A program made the translations under genes and the position numbers. A DNA stretch of 64,000 bases, taken from Octopus sinensis. Taxonomy: Eukaryota. The stretch is from NCBI RefSeq assembly GCF_006345805.1, contig NC_042999.1, forward strand, positions 5,208,001 to 5,272,000, given 5' to 3'. Within the stretch, counting starts at the first letter, position 1, and every line of letters begins with the position of its first letter. Positions 1 through 62,513 of this stretch are shown piece after piece. The notes beneath the pieces were generated by a model that was given only the letters and a program-made list of their open reading frames with translations, made no database searches and was not told the DNA's origin.

Positions 1-742
1 AATTGACATGAATGCTTTGTAGTCAAAATACCAGTTTTTCTGTGGTTTTCACAATATTTTTCTTTTTAGTAAGTGCCTCTATTTAAAACAAACCTATTAA
101 AATTTCTGAATAATGTTTTAGTAATTTAGATATGGACCCAAATAAAATATAATACCTGCCAGTGAAATAATGGATACTATTGTAAGTTATGGAATACAGG
201 GAAGTTCATGTTTAAGTTGGAATGAAAAATGAGGAGATGAACAGGCATAAAAAGATTTACTGTAATTGTAACCTTTCGTCAGAAATGTGGAATTAACTCT
301 GAAGTTAGCCAGAGACAACACATTTTATATTGCTATGTGAATCAAACAAAGTTATTGAGGAACATATTCTTTAAAAATTATTCTAAAGTATTTCATTCTG
401 ATTTGGAATCAACAACACAAGTACCAAGAGATGATAAAACAGACAAGTCACAGTGTACAGTCGTAATCTTGTCTTACACTTATACAATCCTGTTCACCAT
501 AACAGAAATTCTTCTTGTCACTTCTTTGCTTTTCCCTTGACGTAACAGTTCGTTTCTTGAGGGTCTCCCCACAAAAAGATCTCATTTGCTTCCTTCAGTT
601 TTCTTTGTAGGACTGGTTTTCACTATTTTGTTTATATTTTGAGAAGAGCAAACAATTTTTTTGTTTCACCTCAGGGCATTTGAAAATGCTTCTTTTATCA
701 AGTACCATTACGTTATAACAAGCTGATATTTTATATATTAAC

Positions 743-2367
743 ATGGATTCTATCAGGTATCAACTGAGATATAATCTAAATGGTAATTTGGAGCTTGACT
801 TACGAAGGCATCGATTAGTTGCAATACCATCCAGTGTGTTCAGGTATCCAGCAATCAAAGTATTAATTTTACAAGAGAACTTTCTGGAATATCTACCAAG
901 TGACATTGCCATGTTAGCATCATTAAGTGTTTTGCAATTACAGAAAAACAGACTAATGACCATCCCCAGAGAAATAACATACTGCCGCCAACTGCGGTAT
1001 TTGGATCTCACTAGTAACAATTTCATCTCTTTTCCACAAGCCATTATTTTCTTAAAACAACTCAAAATCCTCAAAATAGCAAACAACCAAATCAAAGACA
1101 TTCCATATCAAATTAGTTATTTAGATAAATTGTGCAAATTCGACATTCATAAAAACAATTTACAGAATCTGCCAAATTCAATGGCAAGTCTCAAAAAATT
1201 GCAAGAATTAGATTTATCAGAGAATCTTTTTGAGCAGCTTCCTCCAGTTATATGCTCGTTATGCAACACTAAATCCTTAAATTTTAGTAGAAACTTATTG
1301 ACTTATATAATACCTTGTTTGGATAATTTGAAGAACTTGCAAGAACTCAACGTCTCATACAATAACTTAATGTCTGTGTGTTTATCGATGAACAAATTAA
1401 AGAAGATGAAGTATCTGAACCTGAGTTACAATCAACTGACGGAAGTGCCAACATCTCTACAGCAGCTGCCATACCTGAGAATACTTCACATTCAAGGAAA
1501 TAAAATTAAGCATGTACCAAATGGCTTCACGAGTTTAATGTACCTGAATCTTTCTAACAATCAAATCTATAATTTTACAATAGGAAAAATGAAGAATTTG
1601 TTATCACTGAACGTCAGTCACAACAGATTGAGTCAATTACCTCACGGCTTCTATCAGCTGAAACGACTGGAACACCTGATTGTTAACGACAATCACATAA
1701 AGTCCATACCTTATGAAATAGTAAGACTAAAACACCTACGCACACTGGATATTAGCAACAACAGGTTAACGAGCGTACCCCCATATATTCCTCAAATTAC
1801 AAGTTTGGAATATTTCAATACAGAAAACTGTAACGGAGAACAAGAGACAAACTCACAGAGAAACGAATTCATCACAGCAAAGAAACACTTTATGAAAAAA
1901 CACGAAAGCAACTTAATTCAGAAGAAGTGCCTCGAAGCGAAACCTCCAAAGCAATATTCCTCAGTGAAAAGTTTTACTGGGGATAACCAATATACAAAAA
2001 GAAAACAGTGCAAACGCTTCCAATGCCAGACGGGGACATTGTTGAAGAACACGGCTTTATTAGAATACGACACAACCCATTACACAATGCCATCATATAA
2101 GGCTCAGGCATGGAATAACACAGATGCCAACTCCATATCAAATGTATCCAATCAAAGGCAAATCTTAAATAGAGGAGGAAGCCAATGGCTCCATGCTTAC
2201 TCTAAAAGCACGGACAGCAAACGAAACCTTCACACAAGCGACAGCACGAGTGGTTTTGCTGATGAGATTGAGGTCAGTATTGCCAGTGATGTCTCTTCAA
2301 ATGATCCAGCAATGATGACCATTCACGACTGGTTGGAACCAGAACCAGAACACAGGAATACCAACTG
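743..2367 (+). CDS. LRR-ZU5 gene, coding exon 1: about 15 tandem 23-aa LRRs plus a low-complexity linker
   Basis: Regular LxxLxLxxNxLxxLP repeats over aa ~15-365. In-frame TAA at 716 upstream of ATG 743. Acceptor tttcacctcag at 674 implies an upstream UTR exon. Strong donor TG|gtaagt at 2368, so the ORF-track stop at 2371 is intronic. Confidence 0.93.
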
Positions 2368-3963
2368 GTAAGTACAACAGATGTTATAAACAGGAATTTT
2401 TCTGATAATTAGTACATAATTACATTTCTAGATTAGTTTCAGAAACAATATAACCTTGAAGGTGAAAAGAAAAATAATTATATAAGCATTGTAGGTGCAG
2501 GTGTTTAGTAAGAAGCTTGTTTCCCAACCTGGTTCTGGGTTCAGTCCCACTGCGTGGCACCTTGAGCAAGTATCTTCTACTAGTTTTGGGTTGGCCAAAG
2601 CCTTGTGAGTGGACTTAATAGATGGAAACTGAAAGAAGCCTGTTGTGTGTGTATATATAAAGAACACCTTTCAACCATTGGGCCTCACGGAAGCAATGAC
2701 CAAGACCTTTGGCATTATGTCATGCTTGAGAAGAAGACCCATCAAGCCAAGCCAAGCAAAATCCCAGTTGTGGCAGATACCGGTGTTATGCAAATTGGCA
2801 CCCATGCTAGTGGCACATAAAAGCACCCCAGTGTCAAGCAAATGGCACATAAAACCACACATTACACTCTTGGAGTGGTTGGTGTTAGGAAGGGTATCCA
2901 GCTGTAGAAAACCATGCCAGCATGGACAACAGATGTTAAATGATGATGGTGATGATGATAGGTATGATTGCCTTTGTGTCTGTGTTTGTCCCCCACAACT
3001 GCTTGGTAATCAGTGTTGGTTTGTTTACACCCTTGTAACTTACACACTGATGGAATAACTACCAAGCTTAAAAAAAAAAAGTACTAATGTTGATATGTTG
3101 TACAAAAAATTTTTTCAAGGCGGTGACCCAGCATGGGTGCAGTCTGACTGGAGCAAGTAAAAGATAAAGATTTCCACTGAAATCTTATTTGAGAACAATA
3201 GGATAAAGTATGTTTCATTTAAATTAGAAATCTTGGAGTAGAGAGGCTTAGTGGAAGGAGAGGAAAAAAAACAAACAAACTGATACTCTATTAATTACGA
3301 TGACAAGTGTTCCTGTATCAACAGAACAGCCTGCTTGTCAAATAATTAACAGGCAAGTGGCTGGGCATTCCATGGACATGTGTACCCTTGATGCAGTTCT
3401 CAAGGAGATTCAGCGTGACACAGAATGCGAAGGGGCCGGTCATTTGAAATACAAATCCTTTCTTCCAGCTGAGTGGACAGGAGCAATGGGAAATAAAGTG
3501 ACCTGCTCAGGGACACAACATACTGCTGGGGATTGAACTCTTGATCTTACAATCGTGAGCCAAATACCCTAACCCAGCATTTCTCAACTGGAGTTCCTCA
3601 GGGACACTAGGGTTCCGCAAGAAAGAGTGAGATAGGCTAATGCTAATTTCATGATCTTAATATTACTTACTATACATGCACAACATATTATTGGTTATTG
3701 TAATATAGACATCATCCTATCTAACCTATTACGTTATCGAAAAATATAACAACCATAATATATATATATATGATATTTACCACTTGAACTACAATGAAAA
3801 AAATACAAGAAAGATATGGTATAGAAACACTGCCCTGACCACTAAGCCATGCGCCTTCATCTATATTAGAAGTGAGAAACTGAGAGACATAAGAAAATAA
3901 CTCTTTAACCAAACTCTTTTAAATGGGTTAAAAGCAAAACCTGAAACATAAATTCCATTGCAG

Positions 3964-4186
3964 GCCGACAGTCCAGTTCAGCTTTGATGAAACTATTTCA
4001 TGTGGCTGTAGTGATTCTAATGCAACAGTGGCCAATCCAAGAGCACATGGTCTGGTGAAGGTATTTAAAGAGATATTCAGCATAACAGAGGCCGGAGGAG
4101 AGTTTGTCTCCTCAGACAACTCTAACATCTCTTTAAATATACCAAGTGACAATAATGTGGAACAACACCTACAGGTTATCATGCAG
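3964..4186 (+). CDS. LRR-ZU5 gene, exon 2 (N-terminal half of ZU5-like domain)
   Basis: ttgcag acceptor in phase 2 matches exon 1; ITEAGGEFVSSDNSNISLNIP resembles the ZU5 start (xxGGxL...xxP); CAG|gtgagt donor. Confidence 0.85.
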
Positions 4187-5409
4187 GTGAGTGGAAACAT
4201 TTTTATAGATTATGAAATTCCATTCAAAATCTTCAATTTTAGAATACATGAAATTTTGTGACTGTTTAAAATAGATGCCATATAATCCATTAACTGGACA
4301 TTTCTACATGGATGCACTTGAGGAAAATTTCATTCCTCAGTTGTCTTCTTTGTACTCAGATAATTCTCAAACAACTTACACAACAGGGAATGATTAGTTA
4401 GATTGCTAGACTATGGCCATGCTATAGCACCACTTTCAAAACTTTATTCTTTAGTCAATCAAATTGTTCCCAGAGATTATTTAAGATTGGTACTTGTTCT
4501 ATTAGTTTCTGTTTTTGCTATTCGAGCGAGGTCATTGCCAGTGCCGCTGGACTGGCTCTTGTGCAGGTGGCACATAAAAAGCACCATTTGAGTGTGGCTG
4601 TTGCCAGTACCACCAAAGTGGCCCTCATGCCGGTGGCACCTAATAGCACCCACTACACTCTCAGAGTGGTTGGCATTAGGAAGGGCATCCAGCTGTAGAA
4701 ACTCTGCCAGATCAGATTGGAATCTGGTTCGCCAGTCCTCAGTCAAATCGTCCAACCCATGCTAGCATGGAAAGCGGATGTTAAATGATGATGATAATAA
4801 AGTTCTAAGGATGTAAAGAAACCCACACAACTTGCATCTACCAAATTTATTCACAAAATAATAATGGTGGTTCAACCTGGACCTAAAGATGAAATTATTT
4901 GCCTGTTGAGCCTATAAATTCTTTCAGATCATGGATAGAGCCAGCCGATAACGTGTGCAATACAAGCATGTACTGCACTCTGTAGTGTGTAAAAATGCAT
5001 CTAAAATCCAATTTGTGCAAAGATGTTGCTATTTTCTTTTAGAATTAGAAGAGAACCTCAAGGGTTTCAGATTAGGTTACATACAACAAGAAAATCTTGC
5101 AAATGTTTCCAATGTCAGACAAGTACATCGTTATCACTCAACTTAGCAGTTTGGCAAAAGTGACCCTGATAGAATAAGTACCAGGCTGAAAAAAAAAATG
5201 TACTGGGGTGATTTGTTCAAAATTCTTCAGGGTGGTGCCCTAGCATGGCTGCAGTCTAATGACTGAAACAAGCAAAAGATAAATTTGCCCCACTCTTTTT
5301 TTTTTTTTTAAAATTTCATTCACAATATGATGGAAAGACAAATGCAACATCTGGGGATCATTGAAAAAAAAAAAAAAGGGAAGCCACTCAAGTTCGAGGT
5401 TTTGTTTCC

Positions 5410-5765
5410 AACCCAGGAATTTCATCTCTAATTCTTCTACAGGAACCAAATCATCAGCATATAGGAGTTCCCATTGATAGTAGGTCTTGAACTCCTCTCT
5501 GATGGCCTGTAAGACTATGAATGAGGATTGAACCTAAATGTGTTCCTGTCTTCATGCCAAATTAATTGCTCAACGTATTGCAGACTCATTTTACTAACTG
5601 CACACACATACATAAATTGTACAACCCTAGCAAGCCATTCGTCTACACCTAGTTTCTTTAATGACCACCAGATTACTGAGCATGGCATCCTATCAAAAGC
5701 CTTCTCCAAATTAAAAAAAAATGCTAGATATGGTGTCTTACTCAGCAGTTGTTTCACCACATTTA
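5410..5765 (-). mobile_element. Decayed RTE reverse transcriptase fragment
   Basis: LEKAFDR...IWWSLKKLGVDEWL, followed by QGSxLSP-like and ELLYADD-like segments with frameshifts. Confidence 0.8.
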
Positions 5766-6149
5766 CAGTAAATTAAATGATTCACAAACTAATCCTTCAA
5801 GCACACAACCACATTGTTGATGGGTCAAGTCAGCTACAGTACAGGTATTGCCAAATGTGAGTTGGTTTATAAACAAGAACCTCTCCAACAAGAATCCAGA
5901 ATACCCCAGTTGTAATGTTCAGTTCCTTAGAATAAGATGAAGACTGAATTGGCAATCCAGAGTATTTAAACAATAATAAATGATGATATATTTAGATTTT
6001 AGAACTTAATTCAGTTTAAAGATTTTCTTCTCAAAAGGGTAGACTGCCAGAAGAGATTCCAAGACAATGTTTCATCAGAAATTTGAATTTAAAATATTTA
6101 AGGAAAAAAACCCCCAGTATATAAACAGAAATCTAACTGAAGCAATAAT

Positions 6150-6188
<39 letters not shown>

Positions 6189-6977
6189 CATCATCATCAT
6201 CATCATCATTTAGCGTCCGCTTTCCATGCTAGCATGGATTGGATGGTTCAACTGGGGTCTGGGAAGCCAGAAGGCTGCATCAGGCCCAGTCTGATCTGGC
6301 AGTGTTTCTACAGCTGGATGCCCTTCCTAACGCCAACCACTCCGTGAGTGTAGTGGGTGCTTTTTACGTGCCACCCGCACAGGTGCCAGATGGGGCTGGC
6401 AAACGGCCACGGATGGATGGTGCTTTTTATGTGCCACCGGCACGGTTATATATATATATATATATATATATAATCATCATCATCATCATCATCATCATCG
6501 TTTAACGTCCGTTTTCCGCGCTAGCACGGTTTGGACGATTTCGACCGGGGTCTGGGGAGCTCGGGACTGCCCCAGGCTCCAGTCTAGTCTGGCAGTGTTC
6601 TACAGCTGGATGCCTTCCTAACGCCAACCACTCCGCGAGTGTAGTGGGTGCTTTTTACGTGCCACCTGCACAGGTGCCAGAGGGGTCTGGCATCGGCCAC
6701 GTTCGGATGGTGCTTTTTATGTGGGGGGGGGGTGCAGAAATATAGGGGAGCACCAGTGGGGAGGGGTGGTTCAGAGAAATGATGACAGGTTCTAGGCAAG
6801 TAGAACGTAGGATATCGACAGAGGGGTAATGCATGGTGAAATAGCGTATTGAAGAGGGGGGTTCGAAGAGTAGACACCTATAATGGTGGTGGGACAAGCG
6901 ACATCCGGTATAGATGGAGCAAAATATAGAGATATCCGGTATTGGTGGTGGGGGGTGGGAGGGCGGTCGCACCGCGC

Positions 6978-7246
6978 ATTGGGAGATGAGGTTTTAGGCG
7001 GCAGAAAGAAGACAGGATTGAGATGAAATGCTTTGCGGTGGTGTGAATAAGTTTTTGTGAGTGAAAGTTTTTATGCTTCAGCTAGCATTTGAGACGAAAG
7101 ACAACGATAACGCTATTAGATGGGGATACAATAATAATAAGGCTTGCAAAAACAATGAAAAGAGGAAACAGGTCGGGAACTTAGCTGATGTTTTTTCATC
7201 CTGCGGTATTTTGCTAAGCCTGTGGAAGCGAGTGAAGGTGAGATAT

Positions 7247-7294
<48 letters not shown>

Positions 7295-7470
7295 TGAGAG
7301 AGAGACAGTGAAAACAGAGGGAGAACCGACACCACATAGCGAGAGAGAGAATTGGGAGATGAGGTTTTAGGCGGCAGAAAGAAGACAGGATTGAGATGAA
7401 ATGCTTTGCGGTGGTGTGAATAAGTTTTTGTGAGTGAAAGTTTTTATGCTTTAGCTAGCATTTGAGACGA
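6978..7470 (+). repeat. 120-bp direct repeat (6978-7097 and 7351-7470, one mismatch) around a spacer containing (AG)n
   Basis: Direct base comparison. Confidence 0.9.
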
Positions 7471-7640
7471 TAAAAGTAAAAGTTTTCACAAGCAAATATC
7501 TCAATTGTGGTCCTTAGAATGATAGAGTATAGCTTCCTGAAAGTACCTTATATTACATTTGCTATTAATATTTGAGCAGCTGATAAACTGATTACATGCA
7601 TGTCTTGCCTTTTATTTTTTTTTGTTGGTGATTAATGCAG

Positions 7641-7927
7641 GTAATTAGTATCAGTGAAGACGCCATTCTGTCGGCTCAAATCCAAGACCCTCTCCTGAAC
7701 AACATACTTTCCGTAAGTGTTATTGTGATGCTAACGCCCAACACTGACGTTCCATTTACCATTCCTATAACCATCAACCTGCCAGCACCACCGACACTGG
7801 AAGACAACGAAGTCAGTGGCTGTTTACACGTGCTGACGGCAAAGAACGACAACACCTGTACTCCTTTCTTTAGAAATTATACTCTGGAAAATGGATACAT
7901 AACCTTACAAACCTACCACTTAGCAGG
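7641..7927 (+). CDS. LRR-ZU5 gene, exon 3 (C-terminal half of ZU5-like domain)
   Basis: atgcag acceptor in phase 0; SVSVIVMLTPNTDVPFTIPITINLPAP resembles ZU5 SPxVxVxP..F.KPITxxxP; ends QTYHLAG|gtgagt in phase 2. Confidence 0.85.
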
Positions 7928-9317
7928 GTGAGTGAACATTTCATTATTTGTCATAAATAAAAAAAAACAATTTACAGACATTTAAACCATCCCCACCTCA
8001 CAATTCAAAATATCTTATATTAGTCTTCAACGTACTCAACAGAGTGGTATGAATTTCCTCTAACAAACTCTCTATGTTGGTTTCAAATTTTGGCACAAGG
8101 CCAGCAAGTTCAGGGGAGGGGGAGGAGTAAGTTGATTACATTGATCCCAGTGCTCAACTGGTACTTATTTTATTGACCCCAAAAGGATAAAAGGCAAAGC
8201 CAACTTTGGTTGAATTTGAACTCAGAACATAAAGGCAAATGAAATGCCACTAAGCATTTTGCCGGGTGTGCTAACGATTCTGCCAGCTCGTTGCCTTACT
8301 CTCAATTTATATTGAGAAGCATTCATTTAAATCCTAAATTTTAGGATAAAATACCCAATAATAAAGAGGAAATGACAGACTGAAAAGACAGGGACATTCA
8401 ATCAGTTGGTAATTCCCATCTAGAGGCTTACTTGAGTTAAAATATTTAATACTAACTCACAACAACAATGTACATGGCTGATGCCAGCGCCACCTTGAGT
8501 GGCTTCTGTGCCGGTGGCACGTAAAAAACACTAACCGATTGTGGCCATTTCCAGCCTCCCCTGGCCCCTGTGCCGGTGGCACCTAAAAAGCACCCACTAC
8601 ACTCACGGAATGGTTGGCGTTAGGAAGGGTATCCAGCTGTAGAAACACTGCCAGATCAGACTGGAGCCTGGTGCAGCCATCTGGCTTCCCAGACCCTGGT
8701 CAAACTGTCCAACCCATGCTAGCATGGAAAACGGACGTTAAACGATGATGATGATTTATACTGAAATTTTTCTAGTGAATGAAATTGCCTGAAAATTCAG
8801 ATACTATTATTTTGACCTAAATAACTAAAACAAGAATTTCATTGAAATCCATTTGATAGAGACTACACACACAAGTCACAATTTGTGTCAAGCATTTGTT
8901 ATCATCATCATCATCATTTAGCGTCCGCTTTCCATGCTAGCATGGGTTGGACGGTTCAACTGGGGTCTGGGAAGCCAGAAGGCTGCACCAGGCCTAATCT
9001 GATCTGGCAGTGTTTCTATGGCTGGATGCCCTTCCTAACGCCAACCACTCCGTGAGTGTAGTGGGTGCTTTTTACGTGCCACCCGCACAGGTGCCAGACG
9101 GGGCTGGCAAACGGCCATGGATGGATGGTGCTTTTTACATGCCACCGGCACGGGGGCCAGGCAAGGCTGGCAAACGGCCACGGACGGATGGTGCTTTTTA
9201 CGTGCCACCGGCACGGAGGCCAGTCGGGGCGGCGCTGGCAACAGACACGGTCGGGTGTGTAACGGACTGACAATCGGCATGAATGGGTTAAGGTATTTTC
9301 TTTTGCTAAACTTACAG

Positions 9318-9345
9318 TACTGCAGTGATTAGCTTCTATTGTTAG
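9318..9345 (+). CDS. Probable last coding exon of LRR-ZU5 gene (TAVISFYC*), giving about 720 aa
   Basis: tattttcttttgctaaacttacag acceptor in phase 2; HLAG-TAVIS aligns with the ZU5 end HFSW-FLVVS; an alternative acceptor at 9552 exists. Confidence 0.45.
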
Positions 9346-10048
9346 ATGTGATGTGTGCTTGCTTCTGAATGCATCCGTCAGGTTACATAGTTACATAGCA
9401 CTTCTGTTTTAATGTTCTAACAAAGCCGAGAGGTGTTAAGTCCCCAACTCACAACACTTGCTTTGTAATTGTACTCCACTAACAACACTAAGCTGACATT
9501 GGAAACCAAATCAGTAACTGGGAATTGTTACATTTCCTTTCTTTCTTTAAGTTTTCATCGTTATAACTGGTGCACTGTAACGAAGCTATATGGGGAAAAT
9601 TTATTGATTAACATTGTGAGCAGCTCTGCAACTAATTCTGAACAAATATTAGTTGAAATCCAGCTTAAGAGAGCAAGCTTACACATGTTCAACTAGGCAT
9701 AAACATATAAATGTTTCAGTGTCATTTAATTTTTTTCTAACAAAGCACATGTCTGGAAGAGTTTTTTCTTTTTTTTTTTGAAGCAAGTCAAGCCTTAACC
9801 TGAAGATGATCTGAAATTATTGCTAAATGTAGGACAGATTATTTTTTTAAGATGTAGATTTAAGAAGGTTATGACAGACAAAAAAAAGTATTCATATGAG
9901 ATTAAAAGGATTCTGGATATTATCTGATGTATGGATTTAGTGAAGAAGTAGACCAGTGGGCCTTAACCTTTTTTGTGTAGCACCCCCCACTAAGTGGTGA
10001 GTGAGGTATCATGACTAAACTAACTTCACATGGATGATAATTTATAAA

Positions 10049-10443
10049 TCTCTCTCTGTATATAAAGCTGAAGTTGTCTGTGTATGGCAGGTTTGATAAC
10101 CTTCAACTAACACTATCTCCTCCGAGACCCTGCGGCGCAAGTTGACCAAAATTGAGAGTATGATAGAAGAAGGCTTGCTCTTCCTTCCGTAGAAGAAAAA
10201 ATTCAAATCGGACCTTGTTAACACCAAAAATTATTTGCATCAAAAAGCTGCTTTTTTTTCTATGAAAATCCTTATTTTTTTTTAATGATTTTTTGACTGC
10301 TGTGTCGCCATTTTTCGGAGTATTTCAACCAGAAAAATGTTCACTTAAAGAGAATAACAAGCTACATAATGCAAAAGTTTTACTTTTCAATAATTCCAAT
10401 TCTAAAGGGTTGGAAAGAAAACAAGCCTGAGCAATACTGCTAG
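10049..10443 (+). mobile_element. Probable non-autonomous Helitron
   Basis: A|TC 5' end with tatataaagc, CTAG|T 3' end, no TSD; the subterminal hairpin is only degenerate. Confidence 0.45.
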
Positions 10444-12244
10444 TTTTACTCTAAAAATGGATTGTATAAGCTTTTAACAGTGAAATGATAAAAAAATGAT
10501 ACAGACAAAAGTTGAAAGTTTACTTTATACCTAACAAATTAATCACTGCTCTGTGCCAGATGAGATCTCATTTTTGTGTTAATAACCATTACCAGTTTTA
10601 TCAGGTATAATATAATTATTTACTTTAGGTAAGTTATGTACAATTATGTTACCTCACTGCCCACTAAAGCCTAGTGCCTTCTTGGGGGCAATACTGCTCA
10701 CATTGAGAACCTCTGTCTTATTAGAGACTCAACTGATGGCTACAGTGGAGTAACATTCCCGTATCTACACACACACAGATATCCTGGATTGCATTCAGAG
10801 AAGAGCTACCCACTTAATTGTTATTCAATTATTTACAGACATACTCCACCTTCTGGCCCACATGCGTGCTTCCTCCTCTCTTTGTCTTTTCTAATGTCAC
10901 TCTAATGCCTCTCTTCTTCAGAGCTGGCTTGTCTCCTATCCTTGCCACCCAGCCACCCCTAACCTCTTGCCACTCTTGCTGTATTCATTCCACTTGGTCC
11001 TAACCATTATTTCTAGTCCTTTCTTCTCGTAACATCAACCTTCTGAAATCTTGTCTTTCCTGCAAATGTTGAGCCACAACACTTTCAATGGTGCACTAAT
11101 AGCATCAATTACCACTCACAGACAATGACTTATCCCCCACACTCACAAAATAATATCAATATTTTTACTGGAAGGCATCTACACTTGTGCTTGCCTGTTC
11201 ATATAGTTCCACTATTCACAGCAATATTAATGCAAGAATGTTATAAATTAGAGACTGTATCAGTGATAAGTTGTGGCAATTGCCTTAATCAAAGATTTAA
11301 AACATGAAAAAGTAGAAACTTAGGAAAGAATAAAAGTTTGCTAATTAAGGGTTGGAGAATGCTTTCCTTCATACTTTCAAAGGTTTTCTGTCAGTGAATA
11401 TTTTCTATGAGTTGAGGTCTGAACACTTTTTCAAAAAATACAATACATTTTAGATTAATGCAGGGTGTGGCCTTTGTGATGTTCTTTATTACTTAAATTG
11501 GGCTAAAATAGTCAGGTACATAATGATTTAGTGCTGGGGTTCTCAACAGGGGCCCATATGATCTTTGGGGATCCATATAAGATCTTGTTAAAATTTATCT
11601 GCAATGAATTAGTTACACTTCGACAATACACAAAATATTGTAACACTTATTTCTACAATTCCTAAGAATGTTTAATTATCAAAATATAATGGAAGCCAGA
11701 CATGTGATGATGATGATGATCATTGTACTTTTAAGATACGATCGACTGTTGGTCTAGACTAGAAATCTCTTGCATATATTTAAGTGAATATCTCTGATTG
11801 TTAATTAACTGCAGGCCAGCCTTAATTGTACAGATCCATGATTAAAAAAAAAAAATAACGTTCTGTGACCAGCTTTTTCAGACATTGCATCAAGAGTGCA
11901 CCATGCACTGATGTGTCCTGCAGTTCTTAGAATGGGACAAAGTGATTTGAAATTTTGGCTCATTGTTATGAGTAATTTCTTCTCAAGAATCACCATTCAT
12001 ACTGCACATTAATTAAAATGCATACTTCTCTTCCTCAAACATATAACCCCATTCAATGCCAAAGATTTTATTGAAAAATCATCAGAAAAGTTTTCAAATA
12101 CAATCATATGCTTATGGCTTGGAGCAGATAATACTATATTATTTCTTTCAGATCAGGTTTTGATGGAACTCTTGGAGTCTTGCATTTGTAGCAGGCTTGC
12201 TGCCTGCAGGATATGGCACCACGCTGTCTGTTCTTTTCCATTAC

Positions 12245-12353
12245 CTAAGACTTTCCTGATGATTTTGGCCATTTCAAGGTGGCAAACCTTTTGCAACAGT
12301 TCTACTGGGCATTCTATTCCCATTTCCTTTATATTCCTCTTGATGCCCTCTAA
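12245..12353 (-). mobile_element. C-terminal fragment of an R4/Dong-type (RLE endonuclease) LINE
   Basis: LEGIKRNIKEMGIECPVELLQKVCHLEMAKIIRKVL resembles the LQKxxLLGTAxIxRKVL terminus. Confidence 0.55.
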
Positions 12354-12950
12354 TCAGGGATGTGCTGCCTAGGTAGACAGTACCTACCTTCATAAAATAG
12401 ATTGATAGCAACATCATTTTCCTTTTATGGCAAAATATGTACTTAATTCAATAAAATTATGTAGGTTACTCTGATTACTATACAAAAAATATAATATTTT
12501 GTAGATTAGGTAAGCATAATTCGTCCCTGCTTTTCAATCTCAATATCTAAGCTATGCATAATACTGCTATAGTACACATGCTGCATACATTCATAGAACA
12601 TTTTCTTTATGTGCTATAAAGGCAGATGTAAATCTACCTACAACTCAGTTGCACACCCGTGTTTTACTTATTTTTTGTGTGTTTTACTACATAAAGGTTA
12701 CCAACTGCCTACCCTGAGTAATTACTGATGGCATGTACCTGCTTTTGATACTGTTCCCAAGGACCCAACAATAATTGGTACATTATTATTATTATTATTA
12801 TTTGATGACATGCTTCAAAAAAAAGACATGTGTAAAACTGAACAATCCATATAAAGCACAACAAAACGATATCAACTGATTCACACACCACAAGTTTATC
12901 AATGTTGTTTTTGTGTGTTTTAACACAGGAAAGTTGCAGTAATGACCAGA

Positions 12951-13009
12951 TCAAAATGCCAATATAAGGCCTGTAAATGCACCGAAAGTCTGCTGATGAT
13001 GATTTTGTC
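12951..13009 (-). CDS. Candidate terminal exon of a hinge-less SMCHD1 form (GQNHHQQTFGAFTGLILAF*)
   Basis: Long polypyrimidine acceptor (ttccattcttcgtgtttccatcttcag); phase-1 reading is compatible with exon 37 and stops after 19 residues; no clear homology. Confidence 0.35.
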
Positions 13010-13554
13010 CTGAAGATGGAAACACGAAGAATGGAAACTAAACTTAAGACAGAAGTCAGCTGAGGCTTTATTCTATTTTAATTAAATTCTAAAGACACAA
13101 AATTTAGCAACAAAATAAATGCTTCTCTTTTTTTCTTTTCTTTTAATTTAATTTGTTTCAACAAAATCGTTCCCTCGACCAAATTCAATTTATTGAAACT
13201 CACACAGGTTATAACGAGTAAGAAACCTGTTGATAATTAAAGATAATCACAATTTTGATTCGTTACATTGGTATTAAGGTCCCAGGATTGAACAAGATGA
13301 CTATATATGATTGATACTAAGGATATGTCAGGAACTTGTTGACCAGAAATAAATGAAAAGCAATGTCAGAGATTGCAGAGATGGATTTTGAAATGGCTAA
13401 GACTTATAGTGAACAGATTTCCACCATAAAGAATATTCCCAAATACTATACATTTTGTAGAATACCAAAAAGGTTTCTTATAGAGTGCACCAACTCCTTC
13501 TGTACAGCAAACACAATATATATCATAATATATATAATCTTTATATATACATAT

Positions 13555-13850
13555 ATATCACGTGATCACGTGACCGACCAGACCATCAGATGTTGTTACA
13601 CATCGCTGGTCACAATGCGTTCGCATTGTTTTAGCCATCGAATGACGCCACCCCGCTGGCTAAGCGAGCAGGCCAACAGAAGAAAGAGTGGTGAAAGAGT
13701 ACAGCAGGGATCACCACCCCCTGCCGGAGCCTCGTGGGGCTTTTAGGTGTTTTCGCTCAATAAACACTCACAACGCCCGGTCTGTGAATCGAAACCGCGT
13801 CCTACGACTGCGAGTCCGCTGCCCTAACCACTGGGCCATTGCGCCTCCAC
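13555..13850 (-). mobile_element. tRNA-derived SINE, family 3 (head also at 30915-31296)
   Basis: ggcgcaatggcccagtggttagggcagcggactcgc...gtttcgattc head; tail ends gtcacgtgatcacgtg before (AT)n. Confidence 0.8.
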
Positions 13851-13889
13851 ATACAAATATATATAATATAATAATCTTTATTGACTTAC

Positions 13890-14016
13890 CATTATAGAAC
13901 AAGAAAGGAATCTCCAATGGTTCGATCTTTTCTTTAAGGTTCTGTGCAGAGACTGTGCAGGATAAGACATACTCAAAACCATCTTTTCCTGGTGTGTTTT
14001 CTTGTAAGGTAACTTT
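13890..14016 (-). CDS. SMCHD1: SMCHD1 exon 37 (127 nt), last homologous exon found
   Basis: [20 protein letters not shown]...[11 protein letters not shown]; strong gtaagt donor, phase 1. Confidence 0.92.
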
Positions 14017-17000
14017 CTAGAAAATTAAATGATTCCATTTAGTACCAAAAGTTCAGGACAAGAGAGACGACATAAGAGAAATAAGTCAAATATAATTTCC
14101 TAAATGAAAAAGATATCCAATAACCAAGACTAAAATCACGAGTATTCGTTATGACAAGAGAGAAAGTTAACTCGTTAGCATTCAGATTTCTCTGTCAAAT
14201 GTAAGGTTTGTTTATTCATATCGATTTGAACTCGTCATGCTTTACCTTGGAGCTTTGAGATTTCAAACGACGTGTTTATTTCATCATCATTGTTTAATGT
14301 TCGCTTTCCATGCTGGCATGGGTTGGACGGTTTGAAGGAGGATTGGTAAGTCAGGAAGCTGCACCAAGCTCCAATCTGATCTGACAATGTTTCTACACCT
14401 GGATGCCCTGCCTAAGAGCTTAATATTGTTTATAAAGAAACAAAGTATTAATAAAGATCCTGCTTTCTCAGAAAGTGGTTGGCGTTAGGAAGGGCGTCAA
14501 GAAATAGAAACCATGCCAAATCAGATTGGAACCTGATGCAGCTTACCAGTTTTCAGTCAAACCATCCAACCCATGCCAGCATGGAAAACAGACATCAAAG
14601 GATGATGATGAATGTCATTCTGAAATTTAGAATCAAAACGGGTCCTCATTTTAAAGATTATAATTTATTGTACTGAGCAGATAAAACAAAGTCTTAGAAG
14701 TTCTCCTGGTTTGTCTTCTGCGTGTTTACAGGATGTGAAGAAAGATCTTATCGCAAACATTATTATATTAGCAAGCTGAATTAGATTTTGAAAAACATTT
14801 CTGAGTGAAGACTGTACCTGTAGAAGGGCTCGCCCTTTGAGTAATGGAACCAAAAGCTGTTTTGAAGGCCCTACAAAAGCAGGTATTTCATCCACCTCAT
14901 CTTGGGCTTTAACAACTACTTTGACCGACCCATCAAATTTTGGCTCTACTGGATTATCAAACTGGTCCTAAAAAGATATCAAAATAATATCAATAAATAA
15001 CTTGTGATATCAATTAAGAAAATTAAACAAACTTTGAAGACAAAAAGAATTTCCTTACCCTGAGCTCAAGAAGAAGAGATTCAATTAGGCAACGACTGGT
15101 ATTATTCTTGGAATTGCTCACTGTGGGGGTCCCTAGTGTCTCTAATGGCACTAACTTGGTTGGCACACTGGGGAGCACAGTAAGTGAGATCTAGGAGGAG
15201 AGAAATGGTTACAATGATATTATTAAGTTCTTCATATGGAGACACAACACAACCATTACATACAATGGTCATTCCATGCATCCATACTTTACAGAAAGAT
15301 AAAATCTGTCGGAATGTCTTTTTTTTTCTAAAAAACAAAAAAAAAAACAAAACAAGAAAAAAATCAAACTAAAAAACCTCACAAATAAAACAAACCATCT
15401 TTCACTTATTTAGAAACAAATTACTGACAATAATTGTTACCAGCGTCGCCTTACTGGCACTTGTGCCCGTGCTAGTAGGGTATTAAGAGCACCATCCGAG
15501 CGTGATCGTTGCCAGAGAAGCCAACTGGATCCAAGCTGGTGGCACGTAAAAGGGCATCATTCAAGCGTGATCATTACCAACATCACCTTACTGGCACCTG
15601 TGCCGGTGGCATGTGTAGAAAGATTCGAGCGAGGTCATTGCCAGTACCACCTGACTGACCCCGTGCCAGTGGCATGTAAAAATCACTCACTACACTCTCG
15701 GAGTGGTTGGCGTTAGGAAAGGCATCCAACTGTAGAAACTCTGCCAGATCAAGATTGGAGCCTGTTGCGGCCGTTAAACGATGATGATGAAACTATGTTA
15801 ATCAAATATTTGGAAGTTGAGACATGGCATAAATACCAAAAAATATTGAATTTCAAATTTTGGCACAAGGCCAGCAATTGTGGGGGAGGGGGTAAGTTGA
15901 TTACATCGACCCCTCAGTACTCAATTGGTACTTATTTTATCCACCTCAATAGGATGAAAGCAAAGTCAACCTTGCTGGAGTTTGAACTCAGAAAGTAAAG
16001 ATGGACAAAATACTGCTGAGTATTTCGCCCAGTGTGCAAAGAAATACTAAAATAACAAAGAAATATTAAAATAACACTCCCTAAATACGCATGCATATTT
16101 GTGTATCACATTTAATTTGAGCAGACAAAATAAATGTATAAATGGTGTGGTTTGAACAAGTTTACTTAACGAGAAACAGCAATCAGTTGCTAAATCCACA
16201 CACAATTTTAACCCCTTCGTTACCATATTTCTAAGTAATACACACTTCTTATAACTTTCAATTAAATTCTAAAATAATCACGAATTTAGACTGGTTTCAT
16301 TAAACAACTGTAACTTTTTTATTTATCGACATTTATGTAATTCTTGGAACACAATTGAAGAAAAGGTTCTTAATTCTTAATTCTACTGCACGACTTTTGA
16401 CTCAAAGTGACCAAGTTTGTTTCTGTATTGATCGCTTCAAACAAGCTTACATTTGCTTGATTTCTTCATATCTTCCATTGAAAAGCCCTCAAATTCAGTA
16501 TCACTGCTTGATAGCATGAAACTGTTATCCATTTTCAAAGTTGAAAAAATTCACCAAAGAGAAAAAATCTCCCAAAATTTGCAGAGCTCAGATATCATGT
16601 CAAACAATGTCAGAAAGTAACTCGACTATTTACAAAGTGAAATCACGTGTTTTCACAAATGAGATTTGTGCTGAAATTCCCATTAAAATATCAATGGGTT
16701 TGTTTGGCTATCTTCGGCCAGGTTGGTCATCTAAGCCAAAAACTTTTTCATACAGGTTGGTAACGAAAGGGTTAAATTGGCTACAACCACCAAAGACTAG
16801 TAGATTTTATTCTAAATAAATAAACAAAAAGAGAAACTCACCACTTCACTATCTACATTATATTTCCCATCATAATATACAAACATAATACTGAACTTGC
16901 CAGCCAACTCTGGACAGCGTTTGTTGCTGTAAAATATAGGAAAAATAGAAAATAAAAAAATGCGAATTTTATAGAAAAGATCAAAGGAGAAGTGAGATTT

Positions 17001-20000
17001 ATGAAATAAGAAACAAATAAGAAATTATTATGGGATCAATGGAACAACAAGAAAACTAAAATATCGTCATACCTGAAAGTAAAGATTCCTTTCTCATTGT
17101 TCACGTTGTCAGGTGCATATGAAATTGCCTGAAATAAATTTAGTGTGATAACATATCGAATAGGAAATCATATAAATGAATTTAACATTCAATCTGCAAA
17201 TGGCTGGTTACATTCATCTCTATCAAATGTCTTCCTTTTTTTCTTCATTATCATCACCGTCATTTAGCTTCCGTTTTCCATGTGGGTATGGGTTAAATGG
17301 TTTGACTGGAACTGGTAGGCCAGAGAACTGTATCAGGCTCCAGTCTATTTTGGTTTAGTTTCTATGACTGGATGCCCTTCCTAATGCCAACTACACCACA
17401 GAGTGTACTGGGTGCCTTTTATGTGTCACCAGCACTGGCCATGACTACGATTCCACTAAGCTTGACATGTCTCTTCCCAAACACAGCAAATCACCAACAG
17501 TCTTGGTCACTTGCCATCTCCTCCACATTCAAAGACTATGCTTCAGCAACTCATCCTATGTCTACCTGGGTCTACCTCTTCCACAAATTCTCTCCACAGA
17601 GATCGGTACTTTTTTATGCAGCTGTTCTCGTCCATATACATCACATGGCCACACCAGTGCAGTCTTCTCTCTTGCACACTACATCATCATCATCATCATT
17701 GTTCGACCGTGGTCGAGACAAAGGAATTTACTATGTTACGCCAGACCTCACGGTCCATCATGGCATTACGGAGGTCCTGTTGCTGAATGTCTGTATCCCT
17801 GGAGATTACATCAGGGTAGGAGAGTGTGCGCCCTCTGATATCATGAGCAGATGGCTTCCAGAGGAGAAGAGTAGAAATTACCTCGTTTTCAGCTCTACAA
17901 CAACGTCCAGCAAACTGGACTCTTCTACCTTTCACAAGAGATGATACAGGTGGTAGTTTCCCATATATTTGTACTTTGGTTGGATGACGCTGCCACGAAA
18001 GATTTTGAGCTCTCATAAGGAGGTGAGTATAAGTTCCATCCAACCACCTCTCAAGCTTCTTTCTTGCACACTACATCCGATGCCTCTTATATCCATTTTT
18101 CTCTCTCAAAGCACTCCTCACACTCAGTCGTATGTCCACACTGACAATGCACATCCCATTAACATCTGTATTAACAAAGGTAAGAAGTTATTTGAAAAAG
18201 AAAAACTATACTGTGAGGATTCCTTTTAGAAATAAGTTCTTAACCCATGCTTATTGAACATAACATCTAAACTTCTACCCCAACACACACATTTATACAT
18301 ATATATACACATTTCTTGCACCCTACATTCTGTAATTATATGTAAAAGTTAAATATTTTGAAGACCATTTCTATGTTATTTACCAGTTGCTGAAGATTTT
18401 ATAGACCTTGCTAGTTTCATGTAACAAGCACCCAGTCCACCTTGTAAAGTGGTTGGCATTAGGAAGGGCATCCAACTGTAAAACCATGCCAAAACAGACA
18501 GTGGAACTTAGTGCAGACCTCTGGCTGGTGAGCTCCTGTCAAACCATCCAACCCATGCCAGTATGGAAGACAGACGTTAAAAAATGATGATGATGATGCT
18601 GAAAACCCAAAAAGTGGCTGTCTATTTATGTCCCCCAAATGTTTTACAAATCTGCTGAAGGCAGTTTCAATGAAGTGCTTACAATTCCCAGAGAGAAAAT
18701 ATCAAGGGTTTAATAAGAATTGTTCAATTCAAGCCAGCAAAATTCAACTGAGGTGGGGGGGGGGGGGCAGGGGACTGTAAAATACATAAAGAAACTACTT
18801 ACTTTGGGAGGTGGTATTGACTGGTGACTAGAATCTGAAGGCCATTGTTTCATTGACAGATGTGAATGCTTTGCCAAAGTTAATGGATTACCATCTTCAG
18901 CCAATACTTTCACTGTGTATACTTTAAAGAGATTAGGAAAATAAATATTACAGTTTATTTCATATAAAAAATTGCTAAGTGAAAGGTGTGTGTGTGTGTG
19001 TGTGTGTGAAACGGATTTGATAAAGAAGTCTCAAAGCCTATTTTATCATACTTTTTATAACTAAGTTGGTTGCATCTATAAGATCAGAAATATATATTAG
19101 TCTTTACTCTTTACTCTTTTACTTGTTTCAGTCATTTGACTGCGGCCATGCTGGAGCACCGCCTTTAGTCGAGCAAATCGACCCCGGGACTTATTCTTTG
19201 TAAGCCTAGTACTTATTCTATCGGTCTCTTTTGCCGAACCGCTAAGTGACGGGGACGTAAACACACACCAGCATCGGTTGTCAAGCAATGCTAGGGAGAC
19301 AAACACAGACACACACATATATATAAATATACATATATACGACAGGCTTCTTTCAGTTTCCGTCTACTAAATCCACTCACAAGGCATTGGTCGGCCCGGG
19401 GCTATAGCAGAAGACACTTGCCCAAGGTGCCACGCAGTGGGACTGAACCCGGCACCATGTGGTTGGTTAGCAAGCTACTTACCACACAGCCACTCCTGCG
19501 CCTATTCTATATTATTCTATATTTTTATATTTATTATTTGGTTATTAAGCGTGTGAATTCCTACTTTTGTATGTTTAATGCCAGCTAGGAGCCTGAAAGA
19601 ACTTCAACTTGTGCAAATGTATTTCTTCTGTTTGAAATTACAAAGATCTTATTTGGGCAAAATATTATAATATTTTTTAAAGATTGATTTAAGTTATATG
19701 AATTAATTTAATACCCTTGTAATTAACTGTAAACGTATTCATTTAAAACGATTCTAATTAATATGTCATTTTTTAAAGTTTTCCAATGACATGAATTTTT
19801 TACAATAAGAATTGTCATAGAATAATTTTAATCCCTAAGGAATTCCTAAGCTGTGTATGAAATATTTTCAACATCTCTCGTCTCTTTGTATTAAGTTTCC
19901 ATTCCTGCTATTTTAAAAATTTCTGTGTCTGCATCATGCAAAAGACTTACCAGGCAACTTTGAGCCAGCTTCTACTGCTATATTACTTTTACAATCAACC

Positions 20001-23000
20001 TCAAGACTAAGAGGTTTGGTTGGATCTGGTCGAATGCTGATCTTAATTCTTGGCCCTGTGATGGTTCTACTCCCTCCAAGCAGAGCTTTCACTGACAATT
20101 CATAGACACCCCTGTAAAACGAAACAGTTCTCTTTCATAATCAATTTTAAAAAGGCATGAAGAAGTTTTTGAATTCAGCAGAATTAATTGTAAATAGAAT
20201 CCCAAGAAGAAGGAAAAAGAGAAGAAAAAAGAACCACAATTTGGTCTTACCTTGGCCCATTGACAGAGAAGGCTCCAAAGTCTACTTGTCCTTCATTATC
20301 GGTTTTCAATGTAGTAGCAGAAGGCACAATCTGAAATTGTAAATCAATTTAGCATGTCATTTTTTCCCTAATATCAATATTCCAGAAGCAAAACAATAGT
20401 TTTAAATGATTGCAAAACCAGATGAAGGTTTTATTAATCCACTAGAGGTGAGAAGATTAATTACATTAGACGGATATTTGTCCTCATCTTGTTTGTTGTT
20501 AACACAACATTTCAGCTGATATAACCTCCAGCCTTCATCAGGTGTCGTGGGGAAATTTCAAACCTGGGTTCTCACTCCTAAGGTATTTTTCGATATTATT
20601 ATTATTCAGGTCATTGCTTGGAATTGAACTCGGAATCTTGGGGTAAATAGCCCGTGCTTTTAACCACTATGCCATATGCCTGTGGGCATTCCAGGCAGTG
20701 ACCTGAATAATTATAATAATAATTACATCGAAAAATACCTAAGGAATGAGAACCCAGGTTCAAAATTTCCCCAAGACACCTGATGAAGGCTGGAGGGTAT
20801 ATCAGCCGAAACGTGTTAACAACAAACAAGGTGTGAACAAATATACGTCAAATGTAAACAATGTAAATAATTCCTCATCTCTTAAATATAGAACTGAAAT
20901 CTTGAAAAGATCAGCATTTTTTAAATACCAATCTCTCCTGTTTACTATAACATGTATATAATACTCAAAAGTTGTTTCACTTAATGACTAATAGAAATTT
21001 TGAAGAGACCATAATAAATTTATTGGCATTAAATTTTAGTATGCTTTACATTATATGCTGAACTTATGTTATATGGAAAAACTTTTATAAATTATACAAT
21101 TTGTATTATTTTTAAAGAAATGCAATTCATTATAATGTAATAATTTGCTGATAAAAAAATACCTTAATTTTTTGATCTTTATTCAAAAGGATTTTTACAT
21201 CTTTCTCTTTACATTGGTTGCCCCTGTCATCACACAGCGATACAACTAAATGTTGATTAATTTTTCCACCATCATACACCACAATAGGCTGAAGAAAAGA
21301 AAAAACAACATATAAAGAGGTTTGGTTTGCTGTAGCATGGCTCAGTATTTGTGCTGAATCTTAAAACCCTTCCCACAAAACATAACAACTAAAATGTCAC
21401 TCTACCAACATGATAACATGTACAAGAGAAATCCTTACCAACAGCCAATCCAGAGAGATTTTGTGACTCTGCTCTTCCTGACAAAAATTTCATTTTATTG
21501 GTTTGTTTTCAACCATTCTAGATATTTTATGGCAAATAATTTCTTTTATTGCTATTAAGTTTTTTTAATTTATTTTACTCTTTCTTGTATACATTATATT
21601 GGGTCATCCTATCAATAATGCATTTTTTTTAATTGCATGCATCAAAGTCAAAGAGGGGACGGGATAAACTACCTGCATCAACTCTGTTTATCTTAATTTT
21701 GAAAAATAAAAGACATCATCATCGTTTAACGTCCGTTCTCCATGCTAGCACGGGTTGGACGGTTCGACCGGGGATCTGGGAAGCCAGAAGGCTGCACCAG
21801 GCTCCAGTCTGATCTGGCAGTGTTTCTACAGCTGGATGCCCTTCCTAACACCAACCACTCCGTGAGTGTAGTGAGTGCTTTATACGTGCCACCCGCACAG
21901 GTGCCAGACGAGGCTGGCAATGGCCACGATCGGATTGGTGCATTTTACGTGCCACCGGCACGGAAGCTAGTCGAGGCGGCACTGGCATCGGCCACGATTC
22001 GGATGGTACTTTTTACGTGCCACCGGCACAGAAGCCAGTCGAGGCGACGCTGGCATGAAAAAACAAAAAACTGCATTATTTATGGGATGACCCAATATTT
22101 CACAAAGCTAATTTTTGGCATTATTTCAGTCTTTGATTATCTGCATTCCATTTTACGAGCAATTTTCAAGCAAACAAAAACACTTTTCGAAACATCTAAA
22201 GAAACATTTATTGTGTAAATAAATGAAAAATTGAGAAGTGTTTATTACTGAATGTCTTAAAAATTATCAGAACGAGGGAGAAGACAGGGATTCTAATGCA
22301 AGATTATGGAATAGCAAAGGGGAAATAAGTCATAAGAAACGGGCAGAATTTGGCAGAGAACAAAAAGCTCTATATGTACTGAGCTGGGAAAGGTTTGCTG
22401 AAAGTAGCAGCTAAGTGACATTTGGAGACAGAGCTAGAATGGCACCAAGAATAACTGTTGCCACTCCTATTTCATAATGGTTTCTCTTTTTTGGGGGGTG
22501 GGGGTATCAAGGGCAGATAAAACCTTTAAGATGTCTTCCCATTTAGCAAATAGGTTATAAAATCTGGGTACATGGAGTAAATAAAATGATAGCATAAACA
22601 ATTAAATATAAGAAATAATAATTTTCCTTTTTTACTTTTGTTTAAATTAAATAAAAAAATACTTTACTTTTCTAAACGCTGGTTGAGGAAAAGTTTCATC
22701 CATACAAGCTACAGATATTGCATCACTTAAATGAAGACGACCCTGATAGACGAATGTAGATGTGCGAATGGTTTTCAGATGAATTGGATGAAAATATCAA
22801 TTTTACTAAAATGTAGACTTATTTAATTGAGTTCACCTGAATTTTGCAAGGCGCATCAAGTCATGCATCGAAAATGATGGGAATCATGTTGAAAATATTG
22901 TTTATTAACATTATAATTAAATAAAATTGTTTTGTTTTAAAAGTATGTGTTAATACCCATGTACCCAGACTTTGTGGACACCCTGTAGAACATACCAAAA

Positions 23001-26000: not shown

Positions 26001-26330
26001 TAAGCCTGGTTTCACCCGGTCTGTTTGGATAATGTGGGTATGACTGTTTTCGGTTAGACATAATCTATAACAGCGTTTGTCAACCTTATCATTTTGGGTC
26101 CCCTGTTTTGATTGGAGCCTCCAGCTGTATGAAAATTTCCACCACCCCCACTGTCAGAAAACAGCTTCAGATCGATTTTCTCAATAAGTATGGGGGTTAG
26201 GAAAAAAATACAAACTGCATTCCAATCTATGTACCTGTCTCCACATGTGTGCCATTTTTCATGCAAATCCACCCAGCCATTTGGCTGTGAACCTCAAGAC
26301 AAGAAAGAATATGATTGCCCATGTCCAAAT

Positions 26331-26369
<39 letters not shown>

Positions 26370-38300: not shown

Positions 38301-39868
38301 TCTACCTTAATATCACCTGAAATAACACGAAAAAAAATATGTTACAGCAAATTTTCAAATCTATCAATAAACATCAACAGTTTATGGAAAAATAATTTTA
38401 AAAAACCCTGTGAAAGAATACAAATATGATTTTAAGGATGACAATATTTAACACCCTTCAATATTTTCTCATTTTAATTTCTGGGCTGTAAAATTAGGAA
38501 GAAAAGATTGGCAAACCAAATATGAGAATAGTAAAATATTGCAATTAGTTTGTGATGGTTCATTTGAGTCAGCAAAAGGCAGACACATGGATTTACTTCT
38601 TGGATCAGTAAGATATCATTTGCAAAATAGATTTGAGGAACATGATAATCCTTTGATCTTGTCCCACTCTTGAAAATGTAATAAACTACCATTAAATCTA
38701 TAGTTTGAACTACCATGTATACTCAAGTGATATTTGATCCCAATTAAAAGATGACCACTAATCTGTGGCCAAAATTCAGCCTTAAATAATGGTTTGAAAA
38801 ACTCAACTTATACCAGGGTATATACAGGTGTATAGTTTCTATAAAGTTTCTTAAAAGTGGTTGATATACCGAAACAGAGAGATTATTTTTATCCTGGTTA
38901 TTTTCAACTTTATGTGTATGTGTGTATATATATATATATATATATGAAGACCTGTTGAGGCAAGTGAAATCGAAATCAAATTCGATGACTGGCATCCATG
39001 CTAGTGGAGTGCTAAGAGTACCATACGAGCATGATCGTTGCCAGAGCAACAAACTGGCCTCTGTGCCTGTGGCATGTAAAGAGCACCATTCGAGTGTGAT
39101 CATTACTTCCGTTGCCTTACTGGCACGTGAAAAAACATTCGAGCAAGGTCGTTGCCAGTGTCGCTGGATAGGCTCCTGTGCAGGTGGCACATAGAAAGTA
39201 CCATTTGAGCGTGGCCGTTGCCAGTACCGCCTGACTGGCCCTTGTGCCGGTGGCACGTAAAACCACCCACTACACTCTCAGAGTGGTTGGCATTAGGAAG
39301 GGCATCCAGCTGTAGAAACTCTACCAGATCAGATTGGAGTCTGGTGCAGCCATCTGGTTTGCCAGACCTCAGTCGAATCGTCCAACCCATGCTAGCATGG
39401 AAAGCGGATGTTAAACGATCATAATCATTGGAAACGAACCCTTACAGCTGTTTCTAGTCTCACATCAACTCATGTGTGAATCAACGAGATAGAAAGAAAT
39501 ACAAAAATTATTACCAATGGTTTTCCCTGCAGGTCTGCGTTCACTTTCCACAACTTCATTGTCATCAGGCCAAGAAACGACTAATTGATCAGGTAACCTG
39601 AAGGTAATATGACAAAAAGAAAAAGGTTTGGAATAGAATTCAAAAAAACAACTTGAAATAAAACAACAACACACAGTTGAATCCACCCAACTTCTTTGGA
39701 ATTTGATCTCAAAACACTAACGTTCCAAATCAAGTATAAATCACTCAAATTATTTCTATAAAATAAAGCAACCAGTTGTCAATTTGACTTCTTTAAAATA
39801 TTCATATTTATATTTTCAGAAAGTGTCTTAGAATTGTTAACCCTCTTATGGCCATATTTTAACAAAAT

Positions 39869-39904
<36 letters not shown>

Positions 39905-40255: not shown

Positions 40256-40286
<31 letters not shown>

Positions 40287-43105: not shown

Positions 43106-43183
<78 letters not shown>

Positions 43184-57774: not shown

Positions 57775-57830
<56 letters not shown>

Positions 57831-62463: not shown

Positions 62464-62513
62464 CTTAATAAACGAAGAAAAACAGATTAGGTTATTACAT
62501 CTGTATATGAGGC

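Follow-up and report, generated by a model that had tools for sequence, protein, structure and literature searches.

SMCHD1 of animals, among the closest described systems to the locus reported here, is represented by the mouse and Branchiostoma belcheri proteins, in which a GHKL ATPase, an S5 domain and an immunoglobulin-like (Ig-like) region are followed by a coiled coil, an SMC hinge and a C-terminal tail. No gene encoding leucine-rich repeats (LRRs) is known to be nested in the vertebrate SMCHD1 gene. Two further systems bear on the comparison, namely the plant proteins MORC6/DMS11 and DMS3, and the nested antisense genes of animals, in which a single long intron of the host contains a complete coding gene in the reverse orientation.

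We analyzed a 64-kb stretch of Octopus sinensis DNA (contig NC_042999.1; the window, meaning all 64,000 nucleotides), the minus strand of which encodes an SMCHD1 gene. This gene resembles those of mouse and Branchiostoma in that the ATPase, S5 and Ig-like parts are colinear with them up to the residue before the coiled coil, and differs in that the window does not encode the C-terminal ~430 residues, which comprise coiled coil, hinge and tail. A preliminary description of the sequence had offered three possible explanations: that the intron is unusually long, that SMCHD1 is hinge-less or split, or that the assembly is at fault. We contend that, very probably, the window ends inside a long intron 37 that hosts an antisense LRR gene, and that the hinge exons lie to the left of base 1. 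The missing hinge would then most likely reflect an ordinary gene layout rather than a hinge-less SMCHD1: a long intron cut by the window edge would account for it, with no need for a new protein architecture.

The SMCHD1 exons and the search for coiled coil and hinge

Full-length SMCHD1 homologues, collected in an exhaustive HMMER search seeded with a Bulinus coiled-coil fragment (P0080), are colinear with the minus strand of the window from about 62.5 kb down to base 13891, each in 20-28 high-scoring segment pairs. Residues 139-1635 of the Branchiostoma belcheri protein (P0092, KAI8505876.1, 2068 amino acids, aa) match 62461..13891, and the alignments of other homologues stop at residue 1609 of 2028 (P0101), 1617 of 2015 (P0097), 1590 of 2090 (P0099) and 1001 of 1419 (P0089, RefSeq XP_041360659). 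All of them finish at 13891, at ...FLFYN, on the residue that precedes D-x-K-K-Q, and a C-terminal remainder of about 400-430 residues is left unmatched. When the homologue matches are merged, at least 34 coding segments are found between 13.9 and 62.6 kb, the widest gap being about 4.9 kb (57195 to 62109), which is consistent with the 37 exons and the largest intron of about 5 kb given in the preliminary description.

The assignment to SMCHD1 follows from the order of the domains, a GHKL ATPase and then S5, and from the Ig-like region, which is colinear up to the start of the coiled coil. N-terminal SMCHD1 fragments with HATPase_c_3 (PF13589) and SMCHD1_S5 (PF22899) match 36-62.6 kb, with 42-77% identity across 43.3-62.6 kb. 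Pfam gave no match on the last ~360 residues of the window SMCHD1, which belong to the Ig-like part, and the last five Ig-like exons, a stretch of low conservation, found no match in a word-indexed search of a protein database from which only short proteins (all under 600 aa) were obtained. No protein identical to the window exons was present among the database search matches.

Exon 37 closes the Ig-like region with TTC TAT AAT G and a consensus phase-1 donor (G|GTAAGT, with its GT at 13889-13888), in agreement with the FLFYN ending and strong donor reported before. It is orthologous to the exon at 526-654 of a Bulinus truncatus locus (L008; GCA_021962125.1, JAGDYQ010000207.1:582047-604401), with 53% identity (E 1.5e-11), the same last residues and the same donor. 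At the other end of the gene, homologues align only from residue ~95-139 (window ~62.46-62.56 kb); the initial exon or exons of SMCHD1 either escaped recognition in the final 1.4 kb (62560-64000) or lie past the right edge, and the window may truncate the gene at both ends.

The C-terminal coiled coil and the SMC hinge (PF06470) are absent from the whole 64-kb window, whose left boundary probably falls within an intron of the gene. A tblastn search with the mouse hinge, taken from the PDB 6n64_A alignment, reached a best E=0.7 in the window, and this spurious match comes from the in-frame translation of a short interspersed element (SINE)-like repeat. The same query retrieved 49 hinge-bearing proteins from the database, including those of Biomphalaria, Bulinus, Lymnaea and Mytilus, and the hinges of these molluscs share 63-78% identity with the mouse sequence in the parts they cover. 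None of these 49 proteins matched the window on either strand at E<=0.01. A hidden Markov model (HMM) of exon 38 (D[AV]KKQxQMA...) gave a best E=6 against the window, and a profile of coiled coil, hinge and tail (496 positions, built from 48 sequences) gave a best E=5.1, its minus-strand matches within 1-13889 all being at E=21 or worse. As a positive control, the latter profile recovered 21 exon pieces (E=0.006 to 5e-65), including the 41-codon exon 38, in three loci: the Bulinus locus, L002 (Logan SRR34434955, a 13-kb contig that is gastropod-like in sequence) and L007 (ENA ERZ25069296 ctg15701, 14.8 kb). Because the control exons were recovered in all three, the absence of hinge exons from the window is real and is not an effect of sensitivity, divergence or short exons. 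The preliminary description had found no coiled-coil or hinge exon down to base 1, and tblastn, the 49 proteins and the two HMMs with controls all bear this out; the motifs it had looked for (a phase-1 DxKKQQQM, GKIAHL, SWH, DCVV and GKFGG) are indeed the correct ones for molluscs.

That hinge or coiled-coil exons lie within 1-13889 and escape recognition through divergence or small size can be regarded as extremely improbable. The idea draws on the earlier caveat that a manual scan may miss short divergent exons, and on an exon 38 of only about 41 codons. It is opposed by HMMs that found every control exon in the three loci and reached no more than the E=21 just mentioned on the strand in question, and by a hinge core as similar between mouse and molluscs as stated above, a degree of identity that makes a lost or unrecognisably divergent hinge unlikely.

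A cephalopod hinge exon was also sought through the contigs of P0066, P0062, P0084 and P0085, which have no nucleotide similarity or SINEs in common with the window. The only close nucleotide match was L001 (Logan ERR3431203, 1355 bp), which is 89% identical over one N-terminal SMCHD1 exon, the only exon that it covers, and looks like a related cephalopod.

The gene nested in the proposed intron 37 and the same layout in other molluscs

The visible part of intron 37 holds an antisense gene of three recognisable exons on the plus strand of the window (Table 1), the predicted spliced product of which is 633 aa long. Its first exon has an open frame that extends to 2371 (a 542-aa open reading frame, ORF), and since exon 2 begins in phase 0, the donor is probably a phase-0 GAG|GTCAGT at 2273. 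Pfam finds LRR_8 (3.2e-41), LRR_14 (6e-34) and LRR_4 (2e-33) in this exon, and the nearest PDB sequences are LRRD1 (1.2e-60) and SHOC2 (7.6e-50). The repeats are of the ~23-residue kind (LRR_8/LRR_4), and no signal peptide (judged by eye) or transmembrane segment is evident, as in cytoplasmic proteins of the SHOC2/LRRD1 type. Antisense LRR genes occupy the corresponding position in L002 and in Mytilus coruscus (L009), and exon 1 shares 36-38% identity with them over 308-354 aa. Exon 2 is 35% identical over 100 aa to Bulinus L008:1504-1217, the intron position and phase being the same, and the last exon is 60% identical over 25 aa to L008:1080-1006, with the acceptor cacag|G in both. About 880 bp separate the stop codon of this gene from the exon 37 donor.

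The conserved C-terminal region encoded by exons 2 and 3 is predicted to be all-beta, in a single-sequence AlphaFold2 (AF2) model of low confidence (pLDDT 55). Pfam found no family in it at E<=0.1 for exon 2 alone, and none past threshold at E<=1 for exons 2 and 3 together. Membership in LRRD1/PIDD1, in which a death domain and/or ZU5-UPA (ZU5 domains being present in PIDD1) follows the LRRs, was considered and rejected, as no such Pfam family was found; an impression that the C-terminus is ZU5-like likewise has no Pfam support, and the AF2 model is too weak to bear on it.

In Bulinus truncatus both sides of the corresponding intron can be seen. The N-terminal model (1604 aa, ending at 827) contains HATPase_c_3, SMCHD1_S5 and Ig_SMCHD1 domains 1 to 7, and its exon 526-654 reads LVLQESTSGKDGFEYLLRCTV...ALDIPFLFYN and ends TTT TAT AAT G|GTAAGT in phase 1. 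An antisense, multi-exon LRR gene encoding 1174 aa occupies 991-7617 (-), and at about 10.4 kb there is an exon beginning ctacag|AT GCC AAG AAG CAG CAA CAG ATG (DAKKQQQMATLS...), from which hinge exons continue up to 20087. The intron between the FLFYN and the DAKKQQQM exons is ~9.7 kb long; the split codon G|AT encodes Asp and the spliced product reads FLFYN-D-AKKQQQM. The acceptor AG|AT G[CT]x AAG AA is also present in L002 and L007.

Only the acceptor-side half of the layout, the LRR gene and then exon 38, is visible in L002 and Mytilus coruscus. L002 has a 766-aa antisense LRR ORF at 1492-5011 (-), which is 37% identical to the window ORF, gapless over 308 aa (E 3e-65). Its exon 38 (acceptor tttcag|AT GCA AAG AAA CAG) lies ~3.8 kb beyond the LRR ORF start, hinge exons follow, and the SMCHD1 C-terminus reads ...RIASMTTVVSDDGRKRLRKT before the stop codon. 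In Mytilus coruscus an antisense LRR gene at 1-5610 (-), 38% identical to that of the window over 354 aa (E 9e-68), precedes the DAKKQSQM exon at 9968-10099, and the host intron exceeds 9.9 kb. In L002, L008 and L009 the distance from the LRR gene's 5' end to exon 38 is about 2.5-4.5 kb, and the window offers only 742 bp there.

Two other loci were inspected. L007 has very short introns, with exon 38 through the hinge contained in 2.2 kb, and there is no LRR gene in the 2.9 kb upstream of exon 38; a 540-aa antisense ORF without Pfam matches lies downstream at 10610-12232. In the annelid Ridgeia piscesae no LRR gene was found within 10 kb upstream of a mid-hinge model, the FLFYN|DAKKQ intron itself being outside the view.

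From these comparisons the following layout can be proposed for the octopus gene. SMCHD1 would continue on the minus strand past exon 37 into an intron of at least 13.9 kb, which would hold a complete three-exon antisense LRR gene of cytoplasmic type as well as SINE insertions, and which the window boundary would cut 742 bp past the ATG of that gene. Exon 38, expected by synteny with the comparison loci a few kb left of base 1, would begin with AT to complete the Asp codon (G|AT) and encode D-[AV]-K-K-Q-x-Q-M. Together with roughly nine to ten further exons for the coiled coil, SMC hinge and C-terminal tail it would lie on the minus strand left of base 1, and we infer that these are the own hinge exons of this species, spliced to exon 37.

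A first rival explanation is that cephalopod SMCHD1 is truly hinge-less or split, so that an ATPase/Ig-like protein ends after exon 37 and the hinge has been lost or resides in a separate gene. It is favored by the lack of a hinge within 64 kb, by the nested gene itself, which physically divides the two SMCHD1 halves in all molluscs examined, and by the Bulinus annotators, who called separate models for these halves. We consider it improbable, however, as the consensus phase-1 donor is conserved and finds its matching AT at the start of the following exon in Bulinus, L002 and L007. Reading through after FLFYN yields a tail of 41 codons that is not conserved. The hinge is moreover among the most conserved parts of SMCHD1, and no hinge-less animal SMCHD1 was found among 183 search matches.

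Sequences from other animals also show the two halves as one. In eight gene models or transcript contigs, each of at least 900 aa, the reading frame runs from FLFYN (or FMFYN, FIFCN, FVFYN) straight into D-x-K/R-K, which again speaks against a split protein. The uninterrupted junction reads ...IPFLFYNDAKKQSQM... in P0089 and Logan P0094, ...LPFLFYNDVKKQQKM... in P0097, ...FMFYNDARKQEEM... in the Branchiostoma protein and ...FLFYNDVRKQQQM... in Pocillopora (P0100), and variants of it are found in Logan P0099 and in P0102 and P0103. The lengths of protein and contig (907 aa in 3.2 kb for P0094, 1315 aa in 4.1 kb for P0237 and 2090 aa in 7.6 kb for P0099) suggest that these three are mRNA-derived assemblies.

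It can still be speculated, at the same low probability, that an ancient nested LRR gene finally split SMCHD1 in cephalopods, with the GHKL-ATPase/Ig-like part made on its own and the hinge lost or made as a separate protein. If true, the cephalopod split would be an animal parallel to plant MORC6 and DMS3.

An assembly problem, in which a misjoin or collapse left of or within 1-13889 moved the hinge exons to another scaffold, appears slightly less probable still. Its sole pointer is the size of intron 37, at least 2.8 times the largest other SMCHD1 gap (about 4.9 kb), but the corresponding intron is also long in Bulinus and Mytilus. Furthermore, the window contains no N, and multi-copy repeats, measured by self-BLAST within the window, make up 23% of 1-13889, below the 30% of the window as a whole. 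Exon 37 and the nested-gene exons 3, 2 and 1 agree with Bulinus in both order and orientation, and with exons 2 and 3 conserved between the two, the assembly across 743-14016 is therefore likely to be correct.

Several points weigh against a hinge that lies beyond a long intron hosting an LRR gene. The analyzed sequence begins at base 1 and the hinge exons of this species were never observed, nor was any cephalopod hinge exon identifiable among the database matches. The orthology of the LRR genes is based on synteny and on 35-38% colinear identity, within a repeat family that has similar members (SHOC2, E 8e-50). In addition, the GenBank annotation of Bulinus divides the locus into three models (1604, 190 and 280 aa), which at face value describes a split gene. 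Because the SMCHD1 halves are joined in the models and transcripts of other animals, the last of these is most simply explained as an artefact of the nested gene, and the hinge-only SMCHD1 fragments of Biomphalaria, Lymnaea and Mytilus may share this cause.

Among the explanations offered at the outset, the long intron has thus gained from the layout of Bulinus, Mytilus and L002, while a hinge-less or split gene received no positive support and, apart from the length of the intron, nothing pointed to an assembly fault.

Repeats and other content of the intron

The window is AT-rich, with a GC content of about 0.37, and contains many SINE-like repeats. Outside the nested gene, 1-13889 has the content of an ordinary intron, much of it SINE copies, together with microsatellites. 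An (ATC)n/(TA)n head is present in the SINE-like element, within which a 63-nt unit is repeated 2.5 times at 9064-9223. Two 120-nt direct copies (6978-7097 and 7351-7470) are 99% identical and lie 373 bp apart around an (AG)27 tract at 7251-7305, an arrangement that resembles a recent local duplication within the first intron of the nested gene. Scans of 1-14100 for Rfam families, tRNAs and tandem repeats revealed nothing relevant, with zero Rfam and tRNA matches. The open frames at 5243-5772 (-) and 17699-18070 (-), e.g., ..NLEKAFDRMPCSVIWWSLKKLGVDEW.., resemble retroelement remnants when judged by eye, the fragments of the former being reverse-transcriptase-like, and neither had a Pfam match at E<=0.01.

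Table 1. Features of the SMCHD1 locus in the window, with positions counted from its first base.
Feature	Position	Strand	Remarks
SMCHD1 upstream exons (GHKL ATPase, S5, Ig-like)	13891..62560	-	at least 34 segments, colinear with residues ~95-1635
SMCHD1 exon 37, last of the Ig-like region	13890..14016	-	ends ...IPFLFYN + G, phase 1
Visible part of the proposed SMCHD1 intron 37	1..13889	-	at least 13.9 kb, open at the left window boundary; contains neither coiled-coil nor hinge exons
Nested gene exon 1	743..2272	+	ATG at 743; about 14 LRRs, then a low-complexity tail; 3' end predicted
Nested gene exon 2	7641..7927	+	acceptor cag|GTA, phase 0; donor GG|GTGAGT, phase 2
Nested gene last exon	12929..13013	+	(G)KVAVMTRSKCQYKACKCTESLLMMILS, then stop codon
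SINE-like repeat, example	6144..6723		up to 53 matches elsewhere in the window
Other SINE-like copies	~2490-2960, 4520-4803, 8469-8769, 8899-9257		from self-comparison

Comparison with known systems

A search of the literature returned nothing on the gene structure of invertebrate SMCHD1 or on a nested LRR gene. That the FLFYN|DAKKQ intron hosts an LRR gene, as seen in a gastropod, a bivalve, a cephalopod and the mollusc-like L002, appears to be undescribed in the literature searched. The finding on SMCHD1 architecture is itself ordinary, and the conserved nesting is a small but real addition.

The likeness to plants is superficial. As with MORC6/DMS11 and DMS3, an ATPase part stands without a hinge in the sequence examined; in plants, however, these are separate proteins, whereas the window shows no separate transcription units. 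The conserved splice phase and the joined models of other animals argue for a single SMCHD1 protein.

Far closer is the Bulinus locus, where the donor of the FLFYN exon is identical and a multi-exon antisense LRR gene with the same last two exons and intron phase lies downstream. The two differ in size and exon structure: in Bulinus the LRRs are divided among several exons within an intron of about 9.7 kb, while in the window a single 1.5-kb exon carries them, in a nested gene of 12.3 kb and an intron of 13.9 kb or more. The presence of a nested gene would also explain why automatic annotation of mollusc SMCHD1 is fragmented.

As in the nested antisense genes of other animals, a complete coding gene is located on the opposite strand within one long host intron. 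The SMCHD1/LRR pair differs from the usual nested pairs in its apparent conservation across gastropods, bivalves and a cephalopod, which is unusually deep. If confirmed, the nesting would be older than the split of these three classes. This suggests an ancient host-guest gene pair, which could serve as a natural case for asking about transcription interference between host and guest.

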